IMG/VR virus record: IMGVR_UViG_3300024239_000011
Coordinates: 1-64,000 of that record
Strand: one strand, 5' to 3'
DNA length: 64,000 nt
This document shows, in pieces, positions 7,584 to 62,389 of this stretch. The first letter of the stretch is position 1. Each line of letters starts with the position of its first letter. The position numbers and the translations under genes are program-made. The notes under the pieces were generated by a model that saw only the letters and a list, made by a program, of their open reading frames with translations, was not told where the DNA came from and made no database searches.

Positions 7584-8408
7584 ATGCGCTACCAAGACCT
7601 TCTACTTGAAACGGTTCAAGACCAAAAAAGAACAGAAATCAAACGTCTGTTGAACATGCTTCCTGTCAAATGGAAGGATGAAGATGGTAAAGAAGTATGG
7701 CGTGTTGAACCAAGTCAAATTGATCGCGTACTTGTGGGCAAGAGTGACGATGAACTTGATGATTGGATTGTTGGTATTACAACAACACTTGAATACCTCA
7801 AGCAAAACCCCAAAGCGGTGCTACCTGATCCGTTCGGCGGTTTGACCATAAAAGCCAAAACGACATTGAAGACCATCCTACCGCGCGTGGGTAATAGCTT
7901 CATGAAGTGGCTCAAGGAAATGTATGATCCTGCCGATCTGAAAGCCGCCCAGACAGATGAAAGCACCCTGCTGGACGGACTATCCGAATACCTTCGTGAT
8001 GAACAAAACATCACAGTGCGCGAGGATGGATTGATTGAGTTTTGGGGATTGGACGGAACCAAGCGAAAGATCATCGGTGATCTACCGGTTGTCTTGTTCC
8101 ACTACACTGCCAGTAAGGCGCTTAAATCGATCAAGCACCATGGTCTGTTGCCTGACCGCCCCAGTGTGAATTATCGCAAGGCGCCGGGCGTCTATTTAAC
8201 GACTGAGGGAAGCGGGAATGCAATTGATGGCTATGCCCGTAATGCCGAACAACGGATCGGTGGGTACGCGATCAAGCTTGAGGTGAAGTGCTACCTCCAC
8301 GAGCTTCAGTCTGATCCAGATGATGCCGACATTTCCAGCGGGCGCCATCAGTTCATGGTAAATCAGGTTCCCCCAGACCGAATTATCGGGTCTGATCGTT
8401 ATTTCTAA
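7584..8408 (+). CDS. leader-bearing protein with C-terminal ADP-ribosyltransferase-like domain
   Basis: MRYQDLLLET leader; LFHYT...SIKHHGLLP...GVYLTT ART-fold strands. Confidence 0.6.
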   Translation: MRYQDLLLETVQDQKRTEIKRLLNMLPVKWKDEDGKEVWRVEPSQIDRVLVGKSDDELDDWIVGITTTLEYLKQNPKAVLPDPFGGLTIKAKTTLKTILPRVGNSFMKWLKEMYDPADLKAAQTDESTLLDGLSEYLRDEQNITVREDGLIEFWGLDGTKRKIIGDLPVVLFHYTASKALKSIKHHGLLPDRPSVNYRKAPGVYLTTEGSGNAIDGYARNAEQRIGGYAIKLEVKCYLHELQSDPDDADISSGRHQFMVNQVPPDRIIGSDRYF

Positions 8409-9255: not shown

Positions 9256-10350
9256 TTGAGGTGTGTGGTGGCTTTATTCAATGTGATCCCCGCAGGAGAA
9301 AAGGCGTTGGTGACGAGTTCCGGGGGTGTTCGGACGGTCGTCACTGGACCGAAGCGTGTGTGGCGCGGGTCCAATGTACAAATGTTCCGGCGTGAAGTGA
9401 TTCCTCAGAATTCTCGCGGTACCCTTGTGGATGAGAATGGAAAATTCTCATCAGTACAGGGTCCGTCTGTCGTTCATATTCACCCGGATGGACATTTCAT
9501 CCCGGATTTGATGCGCAATCTGGCGTCCCACGAAGCCATGGTGGTTATTGACCGGAACGGTAAGTATCGTATTGAAACCGGCGATAAAACCCCGACCGTG
9601 TGGGTTACTATGGAAGAGCAGATTCACGAGTTTAAGTGGACTGGATCGCGCGGTGATACTGAGGTGAAAACCCCCGGTGCATTGCGTATCAATTGTCTGC
9701 GAATGCAAGACACTCAGACCTACGTCGAATATCAGGTTCGCACCAAAGACAACATCGTGGCAGCGATCAATCTGATGATTTCGTTCAAATTTGTGGACAT
9801 CGAAAAGTTGCTTGCAAATGACGATCCCATGGGCGCGATGTACAACCGCATCCTGGCGGACATCACCAAGCACGTGGCGACTCTTTCCTTCGATGATTTC
9901 AAGGAAGACACCGAGGCGAAAGTTACCGGGATCGATCTGTTCACAGATACCGGTCGCAAATGGTTCGACAATCTCGGTATTTCGCTTGAGACGGTGGTTC
10001 TACGGGCATGGCGTCCGCTCGACGTGAACGTGCAGCGCATTCTTGAGCAGGCGGCGACTGCTAATGCCCAGAAGGCAGTGGACGCGGCGAATCACGAACG
10101 CAAGATGACTCAGCTTCAGAACGAGGATGCCATCCTTGATCGTGAAGCGTCGCTGGATGCTAAACGCCGTGAAGCTGCCGTTGCACGCGGGCAGGCGTCT
10201 GGTGCGGAGTTGGTCGCCATGTTCGATGCGCTGACGTTAGCGCCATCCAAAATCTCAATGGAAACGGGTGAACGCTTGCTCGCACTTACGCTGGCATCCA
10301 AAGCGGAAACTCTGTGTTTGCCGCCGGAAATGCTGGGGAAGACCCGATGA
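9256..10350 (+). CDS. major vault protein-like / SPFH shoulder domain protein
   Basis: Three ~40-aa repeats (VIP..D.NG....GP), SPFH-like VRTKDN...L segment, C-terminal coiled coil. Confidence 0.6.
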   Translation: MRCVVALFNVIPAGEKALVTSSGGVRTVVTGPKRVWRGSNVQMFRREVIPQNSRGTLVDENGKFSSVQGPSVVHIHPDGHFIPDLMRNLASHEAMVVIDRNGKYRIETGDKTPTVWVTMEEQIHEFKWTGSRGDTEVKTPGALRINCLRMQDTQTYVEYQVRTKDNIVAAINLMISFKFVDIEKLLANDDPMGAMYNRILADITKHVATLSFDDFKEDTEAKVTGIDLFTDTGRKWFDNLGISLETVVLRAWRPLDVNVQRILEQAATANAQKAVDAANHERKMTQLQNEDAILDREASLDAKRREAAVARGQASGAELVAMFDALTLAPSKISMETGERLLALTLASKAETLCLPPEMLGKTR

Positions 10351-10835
10351 GCGAATCTTCCCTTTTTCTCGTCTACAAAAATATGTCCCGTGGGTACGAA
10401 GAGTATCGTAACGGGCATGGCACGGGTCCGATGATCTGGGGGCATTTGGAGCAGCTTTATGGTCTCCCTCGGTGGGTGAGCGATAACAAGAAGCTCTGGG
10501 CGTTGGCGCGTGATCCAAAAGTTCCCGTGCATCTTCGGCTCTGCCATGCCTTCACCTTTGACCGGGCAGTTACGCCTGTTCACAATCTTCTTGAAATGGC
10601 GGAAGCTTTGGAGCTTGCGCATGAAGATATTGTCAAGGGTCGGGAGAATGGGTGGTCGCATTTCGCAGACATCGCCAACGATTTGCGGGCAATCCACAAG
10701 AAGCATAACCGCTATCTTGTTGGGTTGGCACTCAATTGCACATCGGTCGCTGACGTATGGACATACCGTATGAAAGCGAAAGATGGGTGGAACTGCTACA
10801 AATACGCCACCGACTTGACCACAGAAGAAGAATAA
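10347..10835 (+). CDS. hypothetical protein
   Basis: ATGA overlap with the previous stop. Confidence 0.7.
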   Translation: MSESSLFLVYKNMSRGYEEYRNGHGTGPMIWGHLEQLYGLPRWVSDNKKLWALARDPKVPVHLRLCHAFTFDRAVTPVHNLLEMAEALELAHEDIVKGRENGWSHFADIANDLRAIHKKHNRYLVGLALNCTSVADVWTYRMKAKDGWNCYKYATDLTTEEE

Positions 10836-10890: not shown

Positions 10891-11271
10891 TTACGCGCAC
10901 AGCATTGCGGGCGTCAAGAACTTTTTGTCCGCCCACTTCCCGTAATAAAGCGTCAATTCTTCCCCGGCGGCAATGTCCCGCAATGCTGTGAACTTCATAT
11001 GCCGTTCACTGGTGTTGTTCGATGCCACCATATTCGGTGAAGACGCATGGTTCATAAAACTTCCCACCGCGACCGTGCAGTAGATTTTCTGTTTTGTTCG
11101 CGGGTCTATAGCCCATGGGAACGTGTACGGCTTCAGCGAATTCGGAACCGAATCCCATGAATAGAGGACAACCGGGAACGAATATTCCGACCCGGTTTTG
11201 ATACCTACCTCGGTGAAGACGCCACGTCCATGAATCGGGCTGGGACGAATATCGTAGATCAGGATACCCAT
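10891..11271 (-). CDS. SET-domain lysine methyltransferase-like protein
   Basis: SPIHGRGVF, FMNHASSPN, ALRDIAAGEELTLYYG. Confidence 0.85.
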   Translation of the reverse strand: MGILIYDIRPSPIHGRGVFTEVGIKTGSEYSFPVVLYSWDSVPNSLKPYTFPWAIDPRTKQKIYCTVAVGSFMNHASSPNMVASNNTSERHMKFTALRDIAAGEELTLYYGKWADKKFLTPAMLCA

Positions 11272-11937: not shown

Positions 11938-12598
11938 ATGGGTATTTCATTTTCAGGTGGAGTGATTCCTGTAGGGACTTTCAAAATCCATACCAATATT
12001 TCACCAGTATGGGTGACCGCAGCGGGTAGTTTGGGTAATGCTCATACTGGACAGAATTATGTCTTCAATTTTGAAGCTATCGATCCGGATAATGGACCAG
12101 TTACCAATCATTTTCGACATCCAAGGGCATGCCGGTGGTGAATGTGCAGCAATTAATGAAATTCAATTGTTTGATAGTACCGGGCAGGTTACTTTCACGA
12201 CTACATCAACCGATGTTTGGGATAGCGCAACTGGTAATATTCCATATTACTGGAATAATACCGGTTTGTGGGATCGTACCCGGTTAAATGATGGGTACAC
12301 GATTTATGATGGGTATACGGCGACAGCGTTCTTATATAATACCGCCGCAAATAATTCTTATTGGGCACGTGCATTATTGAATGTAACGGGTACTGGCGGA
12401 AAGGCTTTGTCAAAAGCCCGTGTTTGGGTGGGTGGTGGTGCCCGCATTCCATATTCCGTGAGGTTCTATGGTGTTGGAACTTACAATAAAACTGCACAAA
12501 TAAACAACCGCCAAAATACTGGATTGACTTTGTTGGGTTCAACCTCTTTTACGGTTTCCGACACATCGTTGCGTTACGCGGAAATCGTATTCCCATAA
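11938..12598 (+). pseudogene. MGISF-leader fibre/decoration gene, frameshifted near 12105
   Basis: Leader plus partial Ig repeat in one frame (stop at 12141); C-terminal beta domain (IIFDIQG...INEIQLFD) in another frame; TATAAATA at 11904-11911. Confidence 0.6.
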
Positions 12599-13217: not shown

Positions 13218-14441
13218 ATGGGTATATCGTTCACAGGAAGTTTGATACCAGTTGGTACTTTCAAAATTAAAACCAATATTCCCCCGGTTTGGGTAACAGC
13301 AACCGGATCACTTGGGGAGGCTAATGGCGGACACCCATTTACATTTAATTTGTCGGCAACCGATCCAGAAAACGCACCATTAACGTATTCACTGATTTCT
13401 GGAATTATACCATCCGGGTTGACAATATCAGGTTCGCAAATTATCGGCACACCAGAAAATATCCCAGGTACATATACCTTTGTTGTTCGGGTTAGTGATG
13501 GCGAGGGTAATAATGATCGTCAATTCTCACTACAGGTCACCAATCAAACACCAATTTGGACGACGGCTGGTGGCTTGCTTGGCTCAGTAGTAAGCGGGGC
13601 TACGGTAAACTACACCCTGTCCGCAACTGATCCTAATAATGATCCAATAACCTATTCAATTGTAAGTGGATCATTACCAAGCGGAATAACATTAAACTCA
13701 TCAACTGGGGTTATTTCAGGTTTAACCACTGTTCTCGGCACTTATAATTTCACCGTTCAGGCGAATGATGGTCGTGGTGGATCAGTCAATCGTGCATTTG
13801 AATTTACGGTTAATCCCAACTATCCAAATACAGCATTTCTAGTTCACCCAACTTCATTAACATTTGCAGATAGCAAAAATAGTGTGCTTCCTTCAGCATC
13901 AACCGCAACGTACACAAATGGCGGTGGGTATGAAGTTATGGGGTTTAATCTAAACAATTATATTCGATACCCTAATGCGGCTGGGTTAAACATATCCACA
14001 GGTGATTTCACAGTCGAATTATGGTTCTATCCAAGATCAACCGGTACCTATCGTAATTTAGCAGTGTGGAAAGCAGGAAGTTTGTCCCCACTTTATTTTT
14101 CATATCATTCGGGCTATGCTCGCTTATGGGGTTCGTCGGCGGGCGGATCATGGGATTTGTTTAATGCATGGGGTTCATCTTCACCATTACCGGTAAACCA
14201 ATGGCACCATGTTGCTATATCACGAAGCAGTCAATACTATGTCATGCATGTTAATGGTGTTAAAACAAATGAACTAACAACTGCATTAAATCCAATGGCA
14301 TCTAATATGGGCGTTGTTCTTGGGTCGTATCAGGACACTGCCTCTGAATTCTTTGATGGCTATATGCGAGAATTCCGCGTAACTAAAGGACAAGCACTAT
14401 ACGGTAGTGGGAATTTCACCCCAGAAACCAATCTACTTTAA
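13218..14441 (+). CDS. MGISF-leader fibre/decoration protein: 2 Ig-like (He_PIG/cadherin-like) repeats + LamG/ConA domain
   Basis: ATDPENAPLTYS..SG.LPSG repeats; GDFTVELWFY, WHHVAISR, GYMREFRVTKG; TATAAATA at 13185-13192. Confidence 0.8.
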   Translation: MGISFTGSLIPVGTFKIKTNIPPVWVTATGSLGEANGGHPFTFNLSATDPENAPLTYSLISGIIPSGLTISGSQIIGTPENIPGTYTFVVRVSDGEGNNDRQFSLQVTNQTPIWTTAGGLLGSVVSGATVNYTLSATDPNNDPITYSIVSGSLPSGITLNSSTGVISGLTTVLGTYNFTVQANDGRGGSVNRAFEFTVNPNYPNTAFLVHPTSLTFADSKNSVLPSASTATYTNGGGYEVMGFNLNNYIRYPNAAGLNISTGDFTVELWFYPRSTGTYRNLAVWKAGSLSPLYFSYHSGYARLWGSSAGGSWDLFNAWGSSSPLPVNQWHHVAISRSSQYYVMHVNGVKTNELTTALNPMASNMGVVLGSYQDTASEFFDGYMREFRVTKGQALYGSGNFTPETNLL

Positions 14442-14446
14442 AAGAA

Positions 14447-14483
14447 GAAAGAAGGGGGAGCATTTTGCTCCCCCTTCTTTTTA
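14447..14483. terminator. bidirectional intrinsic terminator
   Basis: aagaagggggagca-tttt-gctcccccttctttt between convergent genes. Confidence 0.75.
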
Positions 14484-16880
14484 TAGCCCTTTGATAGTCA
14501 TTAACGGCCAAACTCTTGCTACTTTATTTGCAATACCCGCATTTACAAGCGTATCGATAGCAGGCAATGTGGGTTTATACATAGATGGTGCTTCTTCGAG
14601 TAGTGATTTCCGGTATTCGTCCGCTATGTCACGACGGCACATACGCGGATCAATTTTTGTTACCACTCGAAGTTCATTAAATTCCTCTACATCTGCACGA
14701 CGAGCAGATTGCCGTGGTGCCATTCTACCAGCCCCATGACATGCGCTACAAAGACAATCATCCAGCCCATTCCCACGAAGGATGAAACTACTACTTCCCA
14801 TACTACCGGGAATAATGACTGGATGACCGTAGGGGAATTCCGGATCAGTTGATGGCCCCCCGGCAGGGCATGCCCCTTTTCGATGAATATGATGGTCCCC
14901 ATTAGACCAAATAAGATTGTGGGGAGCATCATATACAAGACGAGCGTCGATTTCCCGTCCAAGACATTCCGACAGCGCCCGCACTACCATCAATCCAAGG
15001 AACATACGATTTGCAAACGCAAAGTTGGCGGCATTGTTCATTGCACTGATGTAAGCTTTAGCTGGTTCGCTATCTCCTGGAAGTAGATAGAAGTCGTGTT
15101 CGTGCTTGAGAGTTTTCGGAAACCATTTTTTTGCCACATCCATGAAGTGCTTACCAATCATATGTCCAATGGACACCGAACCGGTATGCGCCATGATTGT
15201 AATTGTGTTTTGCTTCAACCCCCAGGAATTGGCAGTATAACCGTCGAAGACTTCCTCAACCCGTTGCACTTCCACAAAGTGGTTTGATCCACCGATGCTG
15301 CCGATCTGGTCATCACGGGAGAATTCAGCACCAGACCCGCGCATGAAATCATCAAGATTGAAGATTCCCTCCGTGGGCAGAGAGCCAAGCAGATGCGACC
15401 GCATCACGTCGGCTACCTGTTGATCCTGGCGCCAGAATTTCCAGATGCCTTCGTCGGCATGGCGTTCGTCAAGGAGTCCCTGAAGACCGTTACGGAAGAT
15501 GGCATTGCGCTGGCGTGCCGACAGAGGAATGTTTCGTCCACCCTCGAAGAAGATGTACCGCAGTTTGCGATCCAGAGCTTCACCAAGGCGGGCAAACTCT
15601 TCCTGGGTCACATCGGTAGCCAGGAGGCGCATTCCACAGTTGCCCGTGATGGCAATATTGCCATTACGGCGTATAACAAAGAATGAAGACGGTACTTCAA
15701 AGCAGTATTCAAAACCATCAGGCGATTGGATGATTTGTGGTACAGACTTGGGGGTGCCGTTAATACCAATCTTTGTATTGGTATGCGCGAACACACGATA
15801 GTCTGTCTGTCCATCACGATAATGGATGTCTTCACGCAATACACTGCGATAACCAACTGCCATAAAAGCATAGTTGATAAAATCCGCAGATTGTTTGTCT
15901 CGCGTGTAAAAACATCGTTCTTTGTGGTTCCCATCCCAATGAAAAATTTCATCGGTGATGATTTTAAGTTGTTCGAATGATGCGTCCCATAGTTGTGTAA
16001 GCGAACGATGAATAATAGGACTATCGATGGTGATAGCCGTTCTATCCCCGTATTGCGCTTCGTGTGTTATTGGGATTCCCGCTTTCTGTAGAAGTTCCCG
16101 AGCGCGATTAATTTTTCGTTCTTTTTTTAAATTCAGGGTGCAGCGATTCCCATACTCGTACAGTCTTCCATCTGCACAAAGCATTATAATCACACGCAAT
16201 TCGTCGTCACTCATATCCAACTTCGTATGTCGCACGAACGACGACGGAGCCGTGAGGATACGATGACGATAGCCATTTTTCAAGTTGTTGTGTTGCGTAT
16301 AGACGCTTCCTGCGGTTTCCACCCCAAACATGGAGAAATCGTAGGTCTTGGTGAAGTGATATACCAACATACGATGGTCAAAGCTTAAAGCCTGATCCAC
16401 CCCGTATTTGGTCTTAAAATGGATCAGTTTTTCGCTTTGACGTTTGATGAAACGTGTAGGAGTCACAAATTCAGCAATACCCGTGTGCGGATCGAATTGA
16501 CAGACATCCTGCCCCTGCCAGTCGGCAATGCGTACCCATCCCGTTGGGGACAAGAATTCGGTATCAGGATCAACACAGCCAATATCTGAGCCAACCGCCT
16601 TAGGAATCACGAAGCCATAGGCATCGAGAACCGTTCCGATGGGGATACCGGCACCCTTGTGGAAATCTGGCGTGAGGACGATACGATCCAAGCGCGCTTC
16701 CGACCCCAAGAAACCATGCTCGCGCAGGCTCTTGATGGTGTCCACGACGGCACTGAAACGCACGATCTCATCGACGGATTGCCCGTCAATGAAGACATCC
16801 TCGTTCGCGTATAGGGTTATATCCACACCCGCAGGGGTAGGGATATGGACCCGGTTAGGGTCCAAACGTTGAAGAGACAT
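14481..16880 (-). CDS. rtcB: RtcB family RNA ligase, intein-containing
   Basis: PDFHKG, AVGSDIG|CGMRLL, GSIGGSNHFVE, HTGS, YDAPHN, HRKGA, PGSMG, SACHGAGR, EEAP..YK; CTAAATA upstream at 16939-16945. Confidence 0.92.
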   Translation of the reverse strand: MSLQRLDPNRVHIPTPAGVDITLYANEDVFIDGQSVDEIVRFSAVVDTIKSLREHGFLGSEARLDRIVLTPDFHKGAGIPIGTVLDAYGFVIPKAVGSDIGCVDPDTEFLSPTGWVRIADWQGQDVCQFDPHTGIAEFVTPTRFIKRQSEKLIHFKTKYGVDQALSFDHRMLVYHFTKTYDFSMFGVETAGSVYTQHNNLKNGYRHRILTAPSSFVRHTKLDMSDDELRVIIMLCADGRLYEYGNRCTLNLKKERKINRARELLQKAGIPITHEAQYGDRTAITIDSPIIHRSLTQLWDASFEQLKIITDEIFHWDGNHKERCFYTRDKQSADFINYAFMAVGYRSVLREDIHYRDGQTDYRVFAHTNTKIGINGTPKSVPQIIQSPDGFEYCFEVPSSFFVIRRNGNIAITGNCGMRLLATDVTQEEFARLGEALDRKLRYIFFEGGRNIPLSARQRNAIFRNGLQGLLDERHADEGIWKFWRQDQQVADVMRSHLLGSLPTEGIFNLDDFMRGSGAEFSRDDQIGSIGGSNHFVEVQRVEEVFDGYTANSWGLKQNTITIMAHTGSVSIGHMIGKHFMDVAKKWFPKTLKHEHDFYLLPGDSEPAKAYISAMNNAANFAFANRMFLGLMVVRALSECLGREIDARLVYDAPHNLIWSNGDHHIHRKGACPAGGPSTDPEFPYGHPVIIPGSMGSSSFILRGNGLDDCLCSACHGAGRMAPRQSARRADVEEFNELRVVTKIDPRMCRRDIADEYRKSLLEEAPSMYKPTLPAIDTLVNAGIANKVARVWPLMTIKGL
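15639..16577 (-). mobile_element. intein (313 aa) with LAGLIDADG endonuclease domain
   Basis: Begins CVDPDTEFLSPTGW, ends RRNGNIAITGN before extein Cys; internal IIMLCADG and EIFHWDG blocks. Confidence 0.9.
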
Positions 16881-29758: not shown

Positions 29759-30796
29759 ATGCGTAAACTCGTTACTATCCGTGAAGTATCGGAACTTCGT
29801 CCAATTCCGGATTCTGATTTTATTGAACTTGCTATCGTTGACGGATGGCAGGTAGTGGTCAAAAAGGGCGAATTCCAAGTTGGCGACCGTGGTCTATACC
29901 ACGAGATCGACAGCTTTGTTCCAGCATCAGATGAACGCTATGCGTTCCTGTCCAAGGATTTCCGCGAGTACGAAGGAAATCAGGGTGCCCGTCTGCGCAG
30001 CATGCGGTTCCGTGGACAGCTTTCTCAGGGTCTTATGCTGCCGATTTCGTCGTTCCCTGAAGTCGCTGATAAAGCGAACGGTGAGGATGTTACCGAAATC
30101 GTCGGTGTGATCAAATGGGAACCGGCAATGCCTGCCGAAATGAAGGGTGAAGCACGTGGTTTATTCCCGTCGTACATTCCGAAAACAGACGCCGAGCGAG
30201 TTCAGAACATCCCGGATGTATTGGAAATGAACAAGGGTCATCGGTTCGAGGCGTCCATTAAGCTTGATGGCACGTCTTGCACCATGTTCTATGGTGGTCC
30301 GGATCACGACAAGCACTTCGGTATTTGCTCGCGCAATTATGAACTGCGTGAGTCGGACACCCATACTATGTGGGTGCTGGCGCGCAAGTACCGGTTGCAC
30401 GAAATCCTTTCGGAGTTTGGCGAGTTCGCTATCCAGGGCGAAGTAATTGGCGAAGGGATTCAGGGCAACGTGGAGAAATTGAAGGGGCAGGATTTCTTCG
30501 TTTTCAATATCTACGACATCAAAGCAGGGCGTTATATGTCCCCGGTGGATCGTATGGCGGTGATCGACAAGATCAACGAACTATATGGGGTTGGTCTGAA
30601 AAGTGTCCCGGTGCTTGAACAGTCGATTGCTCTAGACGAGAAGTTCACGACTATTCAGGACATCCTTGACTATGCAGATGGTCCGTCCCTCAACCCCCAA
30701 GCTAAGCGTGAGGGTGTGGTGTTCAAGAGACTGGATGGTGGTGCTAGTTTTAAGAGCATATCAAACGCATTTCTACTAAAACACGGTGATCGGTAA
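29759..30796 (+). CDS. ATP-dependent RNA ligase, DRB0094/Rnl2-like family
   Basis: N-terminal OB-like RKLVTI..ELAIVDGWQVVVKKGEF; motif I SIKLDGTS; QGEVIG, FFVFNIYD, REGVVFK, SFKSIS. Confidence 0.88.
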   Translation: MRKLVTIREVSELRPIPDSDFIELAIVDGWQVVVKKGEFQVGDRGLYHEIDSFVPASDERYAFLSKDFREYEGNQGARLRSMRFRGQLSQGLMLPISSFPEVADKANGEDVTEIVGVIKWEPAMPAEMKGEARGLFPSYIPKTDAERVQNIPDVLEMNKGHRFEASIKLDGTSCTMFYGGPDHDKHFGICSRNYELRESDTHTMWVLARKYRLHEILSEFGEFAIQGEVIGEGIQGNVEKLKGQDFFVFNIYDIKAGRYMSPVDRMAVIDKINELYGVGLKSVPVLEQSIALDEKFTTIQDILDYADGPSLNPQAKREGVVFKRLDGGASFKSISNAFLLKHGDR

Positions 30797-44970: not shown

Positions 44971-46914
44971 ATGGGTATTTCTTTTAGTGGTGGCGTAATT
45001 CCGATTGGTACTTTCAAAATAAAATCAAATATTCCTCCGGTATGGGTAACGGCAGCCGGGTCGCTTGGATCAGCTAATGGCGGGCAGCCATATACGTTCA
45101 ATTTATCGGCAACTGATCCAGAGAACGCCCCTCTTACGTACACGGTTGTTGGTGGTTCGCTACCAGCCGGTTTAGGCATCAGTGGACCACAAATCATCGG
45201 TACCCCGATCAATAACCCTGGCACGTATCAATTCACGGTGCGGGTATTTGACGGTGAAACGGCGGCTGATCGCGTTTTTACAATCGATGTAACCAATCAA
45301 ACACCGATCTGGACTACTGCGGGCGGATCGCTGATTGACGCCACTGAGAATGCCGCCTATTCATTCTCGTTTGAAGCTGCCGATCCCAATAATGATACCG
45401 TAACCTATTCAATTTCATCTGGCTCGTTACCAGCGGGTCTTACACTTGGTTCAACCGGTGAATTGTCTGGTACACCTACGCAATTAGGTATTAGCAATTT
45501 TACAGTACGGGCTACTGATACATTAGGCGCTTTTGTTGATCGCGCGTTTTCAATAAACGTTGCATCGGCTGGTGATCCATATTGGACTGGTGTTACTTTG
45601 TTGATGCACATGAACGGTAATTTCACCGATCAAAAAGGGCATACATTTACAGCAACCAATGCAACCGCTACCGGCGCCGGTAAATTTGGGTCAAATTCTG
45701 CAAGTATTGGTACGGGATATATTACAACTCCATCTAGCAGTGATTGGCAATTTAAGTCCAGTGATTTTACAGTCGAAAGCTGGGTCTATGTTCCAGATGC
45801 AACGTATCTTGCTAATTCTGCCGTGATTGTTGGAACTCACGGTACCGGATCAACTGACGGGTGGACGGTATATTTAAATACCAATGGTACTGCGACCGGA
45901 TGGACAACAAGTTCGGGTGGGTTTGGAACCGGAAATCATGCAGTCACGTCCGCGTCTCCTATAAATTATGCGTCGTGGAACCATGTTGCGTTTGTACGTA
46001 ATGGTAACGTTTTGACGATTTACCTGAACGGCGTAGGAAATTCAGTTACTATATCTAATGGGTATAGTGTTTATAACACTCCCAATAGTTTACGAATTGG
46101 CGCAAACGTTAATAACGGTAACAATTTTACAAAATCAGGCGCATTGATTGATGAAGTGCGAATCACCAAAGGCGTGGCTCGTTACACTACCAATTTTGCA
46201 CCACCACAGTCTGCCTTCCCGGATACTGTCAAGCCCGATCCGTATTGGGCAAATACCAGTATGCTGTTGCGGTTTGATAATTCACTGTCTGATGTGACTG
46301 GGAAACATACTATTACTGGATCAAGCACCACATACGCTGGTTCTTTAATCGGAAATACGTGTCTACAAATCAATGCTAATGGGTATATCTCCACGCCTGC
46401 CCATGCCGATTTCAATTTCGGTGCGGGAGATTTTACGGTTGAGATGTGGATTTGGACACCATCAACTTCCGCTCTGTCCCAAATACCAATGCTTTTCTGT
46501 CAGTACCAAAGTTATAACCAACCAATAAATGCCACACAGGTATATTTCAACCCTGATGGTACTATTGTTGGATACATAACTGCTAATGGAAAGCACGAAG
46601 TAAATGCGGATCACATTGGCGTAATGTCTTCAGCAATAACATTCAGTGAGTGGAACCATGTTGCGTTTGTACGTAATGGCACGAAACTACAACTGTATGT
46701 TAATGGCAACGGTCAAGCCGATGGTGGGTCTAATGTTCCAGTAGGGTACACTGCCTTTAGTTCGAATCTTCCAGTCACTATCGGTGCATACAATTCAACG
46801 GGTTATCACCGTTTCCAAGCCACCACTTATATTGATGAAGTCCGGGTGACCAAAGGGGTCGCGCGCTATACAAGCAACTTCACTCCGCTAAAAATACCAC
46901 ACGCAGCAGTGTAA
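44971..46914 (+). CDS. MGISF-leader fibre/decoration protein: 2 Ig-like repeats + 2 LamG domains
   Basis: DPENAPLTY..GSLPAG repeats; DPYWTGVTLLMHMNG, DFTVESWV, WNHVAFVR, IDEVRITKGVARYT twice. Confidence 0.85.
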   Translation: MGISFSGGVIPIGTFKIKSNIPPVWVTAAGSLGSANGGQPYTFNLSATDPENAPLTYTVVGGSLPAGLGISGPQIIGTPINNPGTYQFTVRVFDGETAADRVFTIDVTNQTPIWTTAGGSLIDATENAAYSFSFEAADPNNDTVTYSISSGSLPAGLTLGSTGELSGTPTQLGISNFTVRATDTLGAFVDRAFSINVASAGDPYWTGVTLLMHMNGNFTDQKGHTFTATNATATGAGKFGSNSASIGTGYITTPSSSDWQFKSSDFTVESWVYVPDATYLANSAVIVGTHGTGSTDGWTVYLNTNGTATGWTTSSGGFGTGNHAVTSASPINYASWNHVAFVRNGNVLTIYLNGVGNSVTISNGYSVYNTPNSLRIGANVNNGNNFTKSGALIDEVRITKGVARYTTNFAPPQSAFPDTVKPDPYWANTSMLLRFDNSLSDVTGKHTITGSSTTYAGSLIGNTCLQINANGYISTPAHADFNFGAGDFTVEMWIWTPSTSALSQIPMLFCQYQSYNQPINATQVYFNPDGTIVGYITANGKHEVNADHIGVMSSAITFSEWNHVAFVRNGTKLQLYVNGNGQADGGSNVPVGYTAFSSNLPVTIGAYNSTGYHRFQATTYIDEVRVTKGVARYTSNFTPLKIPHAAV

Positions 46915-61213: not shown

Positions 61214-62389
61214 ATGAAAACACAGAAAGCATTCAAACTACGACTATACCCGAAGCAATTGCAATCCGAACAACTGAAGCAGTTCGGCGGCAATTGCCGT
61301 TGGTTGTGGAATCATTTGCTTTGGCTGAACCAAGAGCAATACCGCACTGACAAGAAGTTCATCTTCTACGCAGATATGGCAAAGATGTTGCCGTCGATGA
61401 AGAAAGAGACTGATTGGCTCGGGGCAGCACCGGCTTGTTCCCTGCAACGAGTAGCCAGAAACCTTGATGGTGCCTTGAAGGCATCTTTCCGTGGTGGTAA
61501 GGGATTCCCTCGCTTCAAAAAGAAATCGAACTACCGCGACTCATTCTATTTGACCAACCAATCTTTTTCCATAGGGGATGGCGTTGTCCATTTGCCCAAG
61601 ATGGAGCCGATGCGGTTCCGTGCGGGACGAACACCCGAAGGACGGGTTCTATCCGCCACGGTGAGCCAAGACGGCGATCACTGGTTCATGAGTGTGGTGT
61701 GTGAGATCGACGCCCCCAATCAGCCCGTGACACCTGACTTCGATACCTGTGTTGGTATCGACCTCGGATTGAAGGAATTGGTCGTCACCTCCGATGGTGA
61801 GGTAATCGGGAATCCCCGCCATTTGCGGAAGGCAGCCAAGCGGCTACGCCGCCTGCAACGCCGTCTGAGCAAAGCCCGCAAGGGCAGTCAGAACCGAAAG
61901 AAACGCCAATTACGGCTCTACCGGCAACACCGCCGCGTGCGGAACCAACGAGCCGATTTGATCCACAAATTCACCAGTTCGATAACCAAGAACTACAGCG
62001 TGATTTGTGCTGAGAATCTGAACATCAAGGGATTGATACGGAACCACAAATTGGCAAAAGCCATCGCGGATGCCAGTTGGGGCGAAATCCTCCGTCAGTT
62101 GTCCTATAAGGCAATCTGGCAGGGAAAGCATTTCGTCCAAATCGACCGCTTTGATCCCTCAAGTCAGGTATGTTCGTGTTGTGGTCATCGACAGAAAATG
62201 CCGCTGAATCAACGAACCTATCATTGCCCCAACTGCGGTTTGGTCATCAACAGAGACGCTAATGCGTCCCTGAATATCCGCAATTGGGGCTTTACCAATT
62301 TGGTAGGGCAAGGAATGCCCGAACCGACCGCTCATGCGGTCAACGCCTGTGGAGATACCTCTGTCGGGATCAAGTCGCTCGCGGCTTGA
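61214..62389 (+). mobile_element. tnpB: TnpB RNA-guided endonuclease (IS200/IS605/IS607 type), no cognate tnpA seen
   Basis: AFKLRLYP HTH; GIDLG, ICAENL, NRDANA RuvC triad intact; CSCCG/CPNCG Zn finger; tcgctgaaacaggaa right-end-like motif downstream. Confidence 0.9.

Follow-up and report, generated by a model that had tools for sequence, protein, structure and literature searches.

Vault function is unsettled and the origin of vaults is debated. Solved assemblies of the SPFH superfamily, among them HflK/C, stomatin, prohibitin, erlin, flotillin and the 39-mer half-vault, are closed rings or cages. For these assemblies we draw on the titles of the matched structures, on PMC12280208 and on established knowledge. 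Major vault protein (MVP) homologues are known in bacteria (PMC3762200; 10.1101/872010); full-length ones occur in Myxococcales, Cytophagales and Oscillatoriales, where their function is unknown (10.1101/872010; 10.1101/2023.11.10.566534; PMC3762200), and two full-length homologues (~811 residues), ctOa11 and ct2Ri15, have been reported from gut Caudoviricetes (10.1101/2023.11.10.566534). All MVP homologues hitherto described from bacteria and phages are of full length. SPFH proteins are abundant in huge phages, where they have been read as membrane-management genes and vaults go unmentioned (10.64898/2026.10.24.761521). Described here is a gene at positions 9256-10350 of the first 64,000 nucleotides of the IMG/VR virus record IMGVR_UViG_3300024239_000011, a stretch of DNA referred to here as the window. 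Its 360-residue product is probably a shortened member of the MVP branch of the SPFH (Band 7) superfamily that serves as a cage or scaffold in the infected cell, a reading to which we give a probability of roughly 60%. No description of a three-repeat, soluble MVP-like form was found in the literature searched.

The record, 543,035 bp long and rated as complete by CheckV, begins with the 64 kb of the window, in which lie genes for tail tube, baseplate-wedge-like and virion structural proteins as well as for RtcB and RNA ligases. Given these structural genes and the 543-kb virus record, the window belongs to a phage, as the first-pass annotation of the sequence had it. The whole window was translated with code 11, with no alternative code applied. 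The longest open reading frame at the locus, 9256..10350 (+), opens with a TTG at 9256 and is genuine, but the likelier start is the GTG at 9268, because a GAGG motif lies six bases upstream, the recorded protein P0002 has 360 residues, and the relatives have equivalent N termini. Residues are numbered from this probable start, and the gene is made up as follows.

9268..10350 (+): gene of the short MVP-like protein, 360 residues, start GTG 9268, stop TGA 10348-10350
9258..9261 (+): GAGG motif resembling a Shine-Dalgarno sequence, read from the sequence, six bases 5' of GTG 9268
9268..9396 (+): repeat 1, residues 1-43, five β-strands, net charge +5, net basic in most relatives
9397..9519 (+): repeat 2, residues 44-84, five β-strands
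9520..9648 (+): repeat 3, residues 85-127, five β-strands, at the position of the SPFH1 subdomain
9649..10023 (+): shoulder or SPFH (Band 7) α/β domain, residues 128-252
10024..10239 (+): long 'cap' helix, residues 253-324 (72 residues), aligning with the opening stretch of the MVP cap helix, to about MVP residue 725
10240..10347 (+): C-terminal turn, second helix (residues 331-345) and conserved tail, as seen in the AlphaFold2 model, predicted local distance difference test (pLDDT) 63-86

The AlphaFold2 model, built on 144 relatives, has a pLDDT of 95 and a predicted template-modelling score of 0.76. At its N terminus are three repeats of five strands each, and neighbouring repeats are recognizably alike in sequence. 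Local alignment against 2000 shuffles gives z-scores of 4.4 for repeats 1 and 2, 3.5 for repeats 2 and 3 and 1.6 for repeats 1 and 3, and profile-profile alignment with hhalign, in register, gives P values of 2.8e-9, 5.4e-6 and a weak 0.019 for the same pairs. Following the repeats is the shoulder, in which D161 and D186 are invariant in the family and R158, T159 and G237 nearly so. From it extends the long helix, with pLDDT above 95 over most of its length, and the chain ends in a tail of the type L-x-L-P-P-E-M-L that is conserved in alignment A4, its L349 being nearly invariant. A hydrophobic segment was sought with a 19-residue Kyte-Doolittle window (KD19); the maximum, 1.37, falls within a strand of the shoulder, leaving no transmembrane anchor, and the protein is predicted to be soluble because it has no hydrophobic segment. 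Charge is unevenly distributed, with a basic repeat 1 (+5 here; an average of +2.4 across 21 relatives) and negative values for the other domains. These features bear out three of the points made in the first-pass annotation, namely the β-repeats of ~40 residues (its example peptide, residues 43-83, is repeat 2), the SPFH-like shoulder (residues ~128-252), on which isolated stomatin SPFH domains align at residues 140-253 with Z of 11-12 in VIA, and the lack of a membrane anchor.

Compared with the PDB by Foldseek, the full model finds MVP chains in all of its 12 best matches (E-value 2e-17 to 3e-13, query TM-score (TMq) 0.62-0.67, ~20% identity), whereas the ordinary SPFH proteins HflK/C, stomatin, prohibitin, erlin, flotillin and QmcA appear from an E-value of 9e-10 with TMq of ~0.35. 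In VIA, residues 1-329 superpose on MVP residues 320-725 with a Z of 17.5 (320 residues aligned, root mean square deviation ~4.7-5.3); for SPFH proteins Z does not exceed 12.5 and the aligned stretch is limited to residues ~79-336. The alignment with MVP ends near MVP residues 725-743. We take MVP residues 320-725 to run from R7 through R9 and the shoulder to the middle of the cap helix, and it is to this part of MVP that, as modelled, the retained portion corresponds. The likeness to MVP proposed at first reading was thus upheld by the Foldseek comparison suggested with it: the best matches are MVP chains and not ordinary SPFH proteins devoid of MVP repeats, and the repeats by themselves match MVP repeats.

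That last result comes from testing the repeats apart from the SPFH part, with residues 1-128 folded alone (pLDDT 92). An exhaustive search of 48,161 chains, made without Foldseek, returned only two chains at Z of at least 5, both of them MVP: 3gf5, which holds MVP R1-R7 (Z 6.1, with 120 of its 128 residues aligned), and 6bp7 (Z 5.5). The remaining chains matched no more than one 40-residue repeat, falling on residues 40-80. With Foldseek, the top 16 matches of the repeat-only model are all MVP.

Superposed on SPFH1 subdomains, the single repeat at residues 40-80 (window positions 9385-9507) gives Z of 4.5-4.9 over 40 residues with prohibitin, erlin and HflK, and across prohibitin, erlin, HflK, flotillin, QmcA and stomatin the range is 3.6-4.9, again over 40 residues. 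The models are consistent with MVP repeats having descended from a duplicated SPFH1 subdomain. The alignment of ordinary SPFH proteins sets in at model residues ~79-81, that is, from repeat 3, and the simplest description of the domain order is repeats 1 and 2, repeat 3 at the SPFH1 position, the shoulder as SPFH2, a wall helix, a short helix and the tail. Judged from the model, the two additional SPFH1-like repeats occupy the place of the classical SPFH membrane anchor.

At the level of sequence, the family is larger than a simple search suggests: a word search gives two relatives, and an exhaustive profile search gives 396 proteins at an E-value of 1e-3 or lower, 174 of them at 1e-10 or lower and 21 at 1e-30 or lower. 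Close members have 303-426 residues and three repeats, or four in P0017, P0018, P0021 and P0022; they form about 20 clusters, and every cluster that was looked up is small, metagenomic and unnamed. Among 105 relatives searched with Pfam, 35 carry Band_7, seven Vault_3 (best E-value 2e-11) and six MVP_shoulder, with Vault_3 above the gathering cut-off in P0048, P0060, P0135 and P0146. P0004 (49% identity with the window protein) exceeds the Band_7 cut-off with 27.4 bits and has a weak MVP_shoulder match (E-value 9e-4, 19.7 bits, below the cut-off of 25). In long relatives of 600-814 residues, a hidden Markov model (HMM) built from the 21 close relatives matches the C-terminal half, and its repeat part matches further tandem copies towards their N termini; the window protein thus has the architecture of the last third of a repeat array together with the shoulder and helix.

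Other searches returned less. PHROGs and NCBIfam gave nothing for the window protein, and neither the single protein nor a three-sequence profile gave anything meaningful by sequence against the PDB; RadA appeared there at an E-value of 0.6 and was set aside as chance. No match was found by tblastn against the INPHARED phage records with the window protein, P0005 and the long relative P0146 as queries, an IMG/VR scan with a six-sequence alignment found no relatives, and a word search with the long relative P0060 returned P0060 itself and nothing else.

Two relatives deserve mention in their own right. P0025 (414 residues, profile E-value 7e-29), a fairly close relative, was found in the transcriptome of a eukaryote (Rhodelphis limneticus, EukProt); protists may also have short MVP-like proteins, or the transcript may stem from a contaminant. 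The gene of P0009 (L010:440-1549) contains 20 in-frame TGA codons and ends in TAA. Because 16 of these 20 fall at alignment columns in which glycine is the commonest residue (six of these columns have glycine in all 19 other members), TGA is read as glycine, as in NCBI code 25 of Gracilibacteria/Absconditabacteria or their phages. In the collection P0009 was translated with tryptophan for TGA, and P0021 in alignment A4 has the same tryptophan-for-glycine pattern.

Relatives of the gene lie in both viral and cellular surroundings. Phage-like are the contigs L002 and L003, the latter with Acb1, HNH and methyltransferase genes; cell-like are L006, with MacB, ClpB-like and Fic genes, and L007. A clearly chromosomal contig of a metagenome-assembled genome carries a copy with 46% identity, flanked on one side by HrcA-GrpE-DnaK and MurJ; on its other side lie a folate enzyme, PilN/PilO and an LCP protein. 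Because of this copy the gene is not phage-specific. The relatives' contigs hold no other genes in common with this phage, and the 162-residue downstream and divergent upstream genes of the window have no counterparts at the relatives' loci. With contexts so varied and no shared neighbour, the gene behaves as a stand-alone unit, found in bacteria and sporadically in phages.

On L003 (140-3925), the contig of P0005, a DUF2828/DUF7788 protein is encoded one small gene upstream of the MVP-like gene, an ordinary Band_7 protein two genes downstream and Acb1, an anti-CBASS protein, further on. This arrangement was not seen at the other relatives or in the genome of the window.

Elsewhere in the same phage are two further Band_7/SPFH proteins, at G000:C1:72817-73260 (-) and 112542-113015 (-) (loci L005 and L004, respectively). 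These proteins, of ~257 and 558 residues, have hydrophobic N termini (KD19 2.6-2.8 at residues 5-7) and do not match the HMM of the MVP-like family; by their sequences they are membrane-anchored SPFH proteins of the classical type.

Several results weigh against assigning the window protein to the MVP branch with a cage or scaffold role. None of Pfam Vault, Vault_2, Vault_3 and Vault_4 matches the whole protein or its N-terminal 135 residues at E-values up to 10, MVP_shoulder (PF11978) does not match it either, and Band_7 (PF01145) is sub-threshold (residues 137-281, 16.7 bits, cut-off 23.6), so that MVP membership by sequence is only transitive. The Z of the repeats alone (6.1) is modest and lies below the level at which the tool's Z is trusted by itself; because of this, the repeat assignment depends less on the score than on the tandem match being exclusive to MVP. 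The canonical hydrophobic periodicity of 3.5-3.6 is absent from the long helix, which has no signal at 3.3-3.8 residues; of the short helical coiled coil proposed at first reading, the helix is present, although it is long. A conserved neighbour, cargo or partner was sought beside the gene at the relatives' loci and none was found, nor does a search of the 543-kb genome find a TROVE (TEP1-like) or DUF2828 gene. For the functions suggested at first reading, a miniature vault or cage that may shield phage components or remodel membrane microdomains, the analyses yielded no support.

What the model and sequence do establish for the protein is its fold, domain order, solubility and charge pattern. 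On the reading of it as a shortened MVP-type protein, copies would pack side by side through their repeats and shoulders, the long helices would form a parallel barrel, and the result would be a ring or dome, open at the rim formed by repeat 1. This assembly is proposed on the model of the solved complexes of the SPFH superfamily and of vaults, which are closed rings or cages. As repeat 1 alone is basic and the rest of the protein acidic, the rim would more probably sit on an anionic surface, either membrane or nucleic acid, than be inserted into a membrane; alternatively, it might pair with a second dome. The resulting cage or scaffold would enclose or organize some target in the infected cell. 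The phage copy is most probably an auxiliary gene of bacterial origin, given the 46%-identical chromosomal copy and the relatives on cell-like contigs.

A bolder form of this proposal is that the protein and its bacterial relatives form a closed or dome-shaped, membrane-free mini-vault, a new prokaryotic and phage nanocompartment built from a minimal MVP and intermediate between SPFH cages and the eukaryotic vault, which in the megaphage would house cargo or act as a sink for NAD-derived nucleotides by way of the shoulder pocket known from human vaults. So specific a picture is speculative and we regard it as rather unlikely.

Among the alternatives, the protein could be an ordinary SPFH/Band 7 protein that organizes or stabilizes the membrane of the infected host, for instance through control of a membrane protease in the manner of HflK/C, with its likeness to MVP functionally uninformative. 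The shoulder is indeed an SPFH domain, the viral matches in BFVD are Band 7 proteins of phages and giant viruses, huge phages commonly have SPFH proteins, which are taken for membrane-management genes (10.64898/2026.10.24.761521), and the basic repeat 1 could bind anionic lipids peripherally. Against this, the protein lacks a transmembrane segment or hairpin, when the phage already has two anchored Band_7 proteins, and it carries two extra repeats of MVP type at the anchor position; ordinary SPFH proteins match only residues ~79-336 with scores below those of MVP. We consider a plain membrane role unlikely, if still credible. Very improbable, by our estimate, is a cage or oligomer that binds small nucleotides, for example NAD+, ADP-ribose or the immune signals made from these, and so acts as a phage 'sponge' against NAD-based or nucleotide-signalling defences. 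The idea has a precedent in human MVP, which binds NAD+ and ADP-ribose in a basic shoulder pocket between neighbouring subunits (PMC12280208; 10.64898/2026.05.01.722283). The part of MVP that is retained here (R7-R9 and shoulder) holds this pocket (R437, R511, L517 and the keyhole loop), the shoulder has conserved charged residues in R158 (nearly invariant), D161 and D186 (both invariant), the Acb1 anti-CBASS gene lies on one relative's contig, and a weakly ADP-ribosyltransferase (ART)/PARP-like gene lies two genes upstream in the window. Yet the phage shoulder is net acidic where the MVP pocket is basic, the ART match is sub-threshold and lies beyond a gene on the opposite strand, and close relatives are also present in ordinary bacterial chromosomes.

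The same presence of close relatives in non-phage chromosomal contexts speaks against a virion structural or decoration protein, in which the β-repeats and a helical stalk would be part of a large capsid or tail. Elongated β-repeat proteins are common in virions, and the window has tail tube, baseplate-wedge-like and virion structural genes, the nearest at 13218-14441; no PHROG structural family matches the protein, though, and the fold match spans the whole MVP/SPFH architecture rather than an immunoglobulin-like or fibre fold, which makes a place in the virion scarcely probable at all. The reading as a short MVP-type cage or scaffold is the one we retain.

Immediately 3' of the MVP-like gene, and probably co-translated with it because the stop and start overlap as ATGA, is the following gene.

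10347..10835 (+): downstream gene, 162 residues from ATG 10347, PHROG 19610, function unknown

The PHROG 19610 match begins at residue 12 of a longer version of this open reading frame. On the opposite strand just 3' of the locus, 10891-11271 (-) encodes a 126-residue SET-domain protein (Pfam SET, E-value 4e-13), a putative lysine methyltransferase. Two genes upstream of the MVP-like gene, past an opposite-strand gene, is 7584-8408 (+), whose 274-residue product has a weak, sub-threshold match (E-value 0.005) to Tox-ART-HYD1, an ADP-ribosyltransferase domain of the H-Y-D type, and is a weak language-model neighbour (score 0.88) among phage clusters with PARP domains. This gene is of interest as vaults house PARP and bind NAD+; it is unlinked to the MVP-like gene in relatives, and the evidence for its identity is weak. 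A vault-like set of partners in the phage was considered and dropped, the genome having no TROVE/DUF2828 gene and the ART/PARP lead at 7584-8408 having stayed sub-threshold.

Farther along the window, 14481-16880 (-) encodes a 799-residue protein in which a PhoH-like region is joined to an RtcB tRNA-splicing ligase (PHROG 1075, E-value 2e-56), and 29759-30796 (+) encodes a separate RNA ligase (PHROG 968, E-value 2e-87); the fusion and the ligase suggest an RNA-repair toolkit. A near-identical N-terminal module, MGISF.G..IPVGTFKI.TNI.PVWVTA.GSLG, is shared by the 67-residue open reading frame at 11938-12141 (+) and the 407-residue one at 13218-14441 (+). The former is followed in another frame by a 186-residue reading frame, 12038-12598 (+), and may, from this arrangement, be a frameshifted paralogue. 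The reading frames 13218-14441 (+) and 44971-46914 (+) have PHROG families in common that are annotated as baseplate wedge or virion structural. Also present within the phage genome is a 391-residue transposase, 61214-62389 (+) (PHROG 506, E-value 6e-128).

The protein is of interest mainly because it is vault-like, minimal and tractable and forms a bridge between SPFH cages and vaults. A natural form of 360 residues would be far more tractable for work on structure and assembly than a 78-mer of ~100-kDa subunits; it is predicted to be soluble, is confidently modelled and occurs in a megaphage and in bacterial chromosomes alike. The models suggest a way in which the vault wall could have arisen from an SPFH protein, its anchor being replaced by duplicated SPFH1-like repeats. 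Should the protein assemble by itself, it would provide a small cage for engineering. To the phage it adds a third, unanchored SPFH-superfamily protein beside two anchored ones, which hints at a distinct role in the infected cell.

Among described systems, the closest is eukaryotic MVP (PDB 4V60 from rat, 9BW5 and 9BW6 from human and 9Z4W from rabbit), which has the same order of five-stranded repeats, SPFH-like shoulder and long helix. Over its superposition on MVP residues 320-725 the model has 17-20% identity, the repeats alone match the R1-R7 crystal structures, and both proteins are soluble and without a membrane anchor. MVP, however, has nine repeats in ~850-900 residues, in contrast with three in 360 here. 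Its cap helix is said, in the 2009 work of Tanaka et al., to extend to about residue 800, whereas the helix of the window protein has 72 residues and gives way to the short helix and tail, without the cap-ring of MVP. Absent too are a Pfam Vault match from the protein and a TROVE (TEP1-like) gene from the phage genome. The full-length bacterial and phage MVP homologues, of ~810-820 residues, carry the full repeat set, of which the window protein has only the last three; the long metagenomic relatives P0060, P0135 and P0146 (~800 residues) have Vault_3 with or without Band_7, and the family HMM lies on their C-terminal halves.

The SPFH cage proteins HflK/C, stomatin, prohibitin, erlin, flotillin and QmcA likewise have an SPFH domain, a long helix and a short C-terminal helix, and match the model with structural Z of 11-12.5 over residues ~79-336. 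In helix length the window protein is closer to these proteins than to MVP, and its helix aligns with those of prohibitin, HflK/C, erlin and flotillin; unlike classical SPFH proteins, it has no transmembrane segment or hairpin and has two more β-repeats N-terminal to the SPFH1 equivalent. Similar in shoulder and helix, and also shorter than MVP, are ESM Atlas clusters with MVP_shoulder/Vault_3, in part from Uroviricota (representatives of 416 and 641 residues; TM-score by query 0.59-0.65), which are automatic clusters without description; the 416-residue representative aligns only with residues 75-334, that is, with one repeat, the shoulder and the helix. With three repeats where MVP has nine, and lacking the long cap helix with its cap-ring, the Pfam Vault matches and the companion proteins, the window protein is not filed as MVP proper; it is an MVP-like short variant within the SPFH superfamily.

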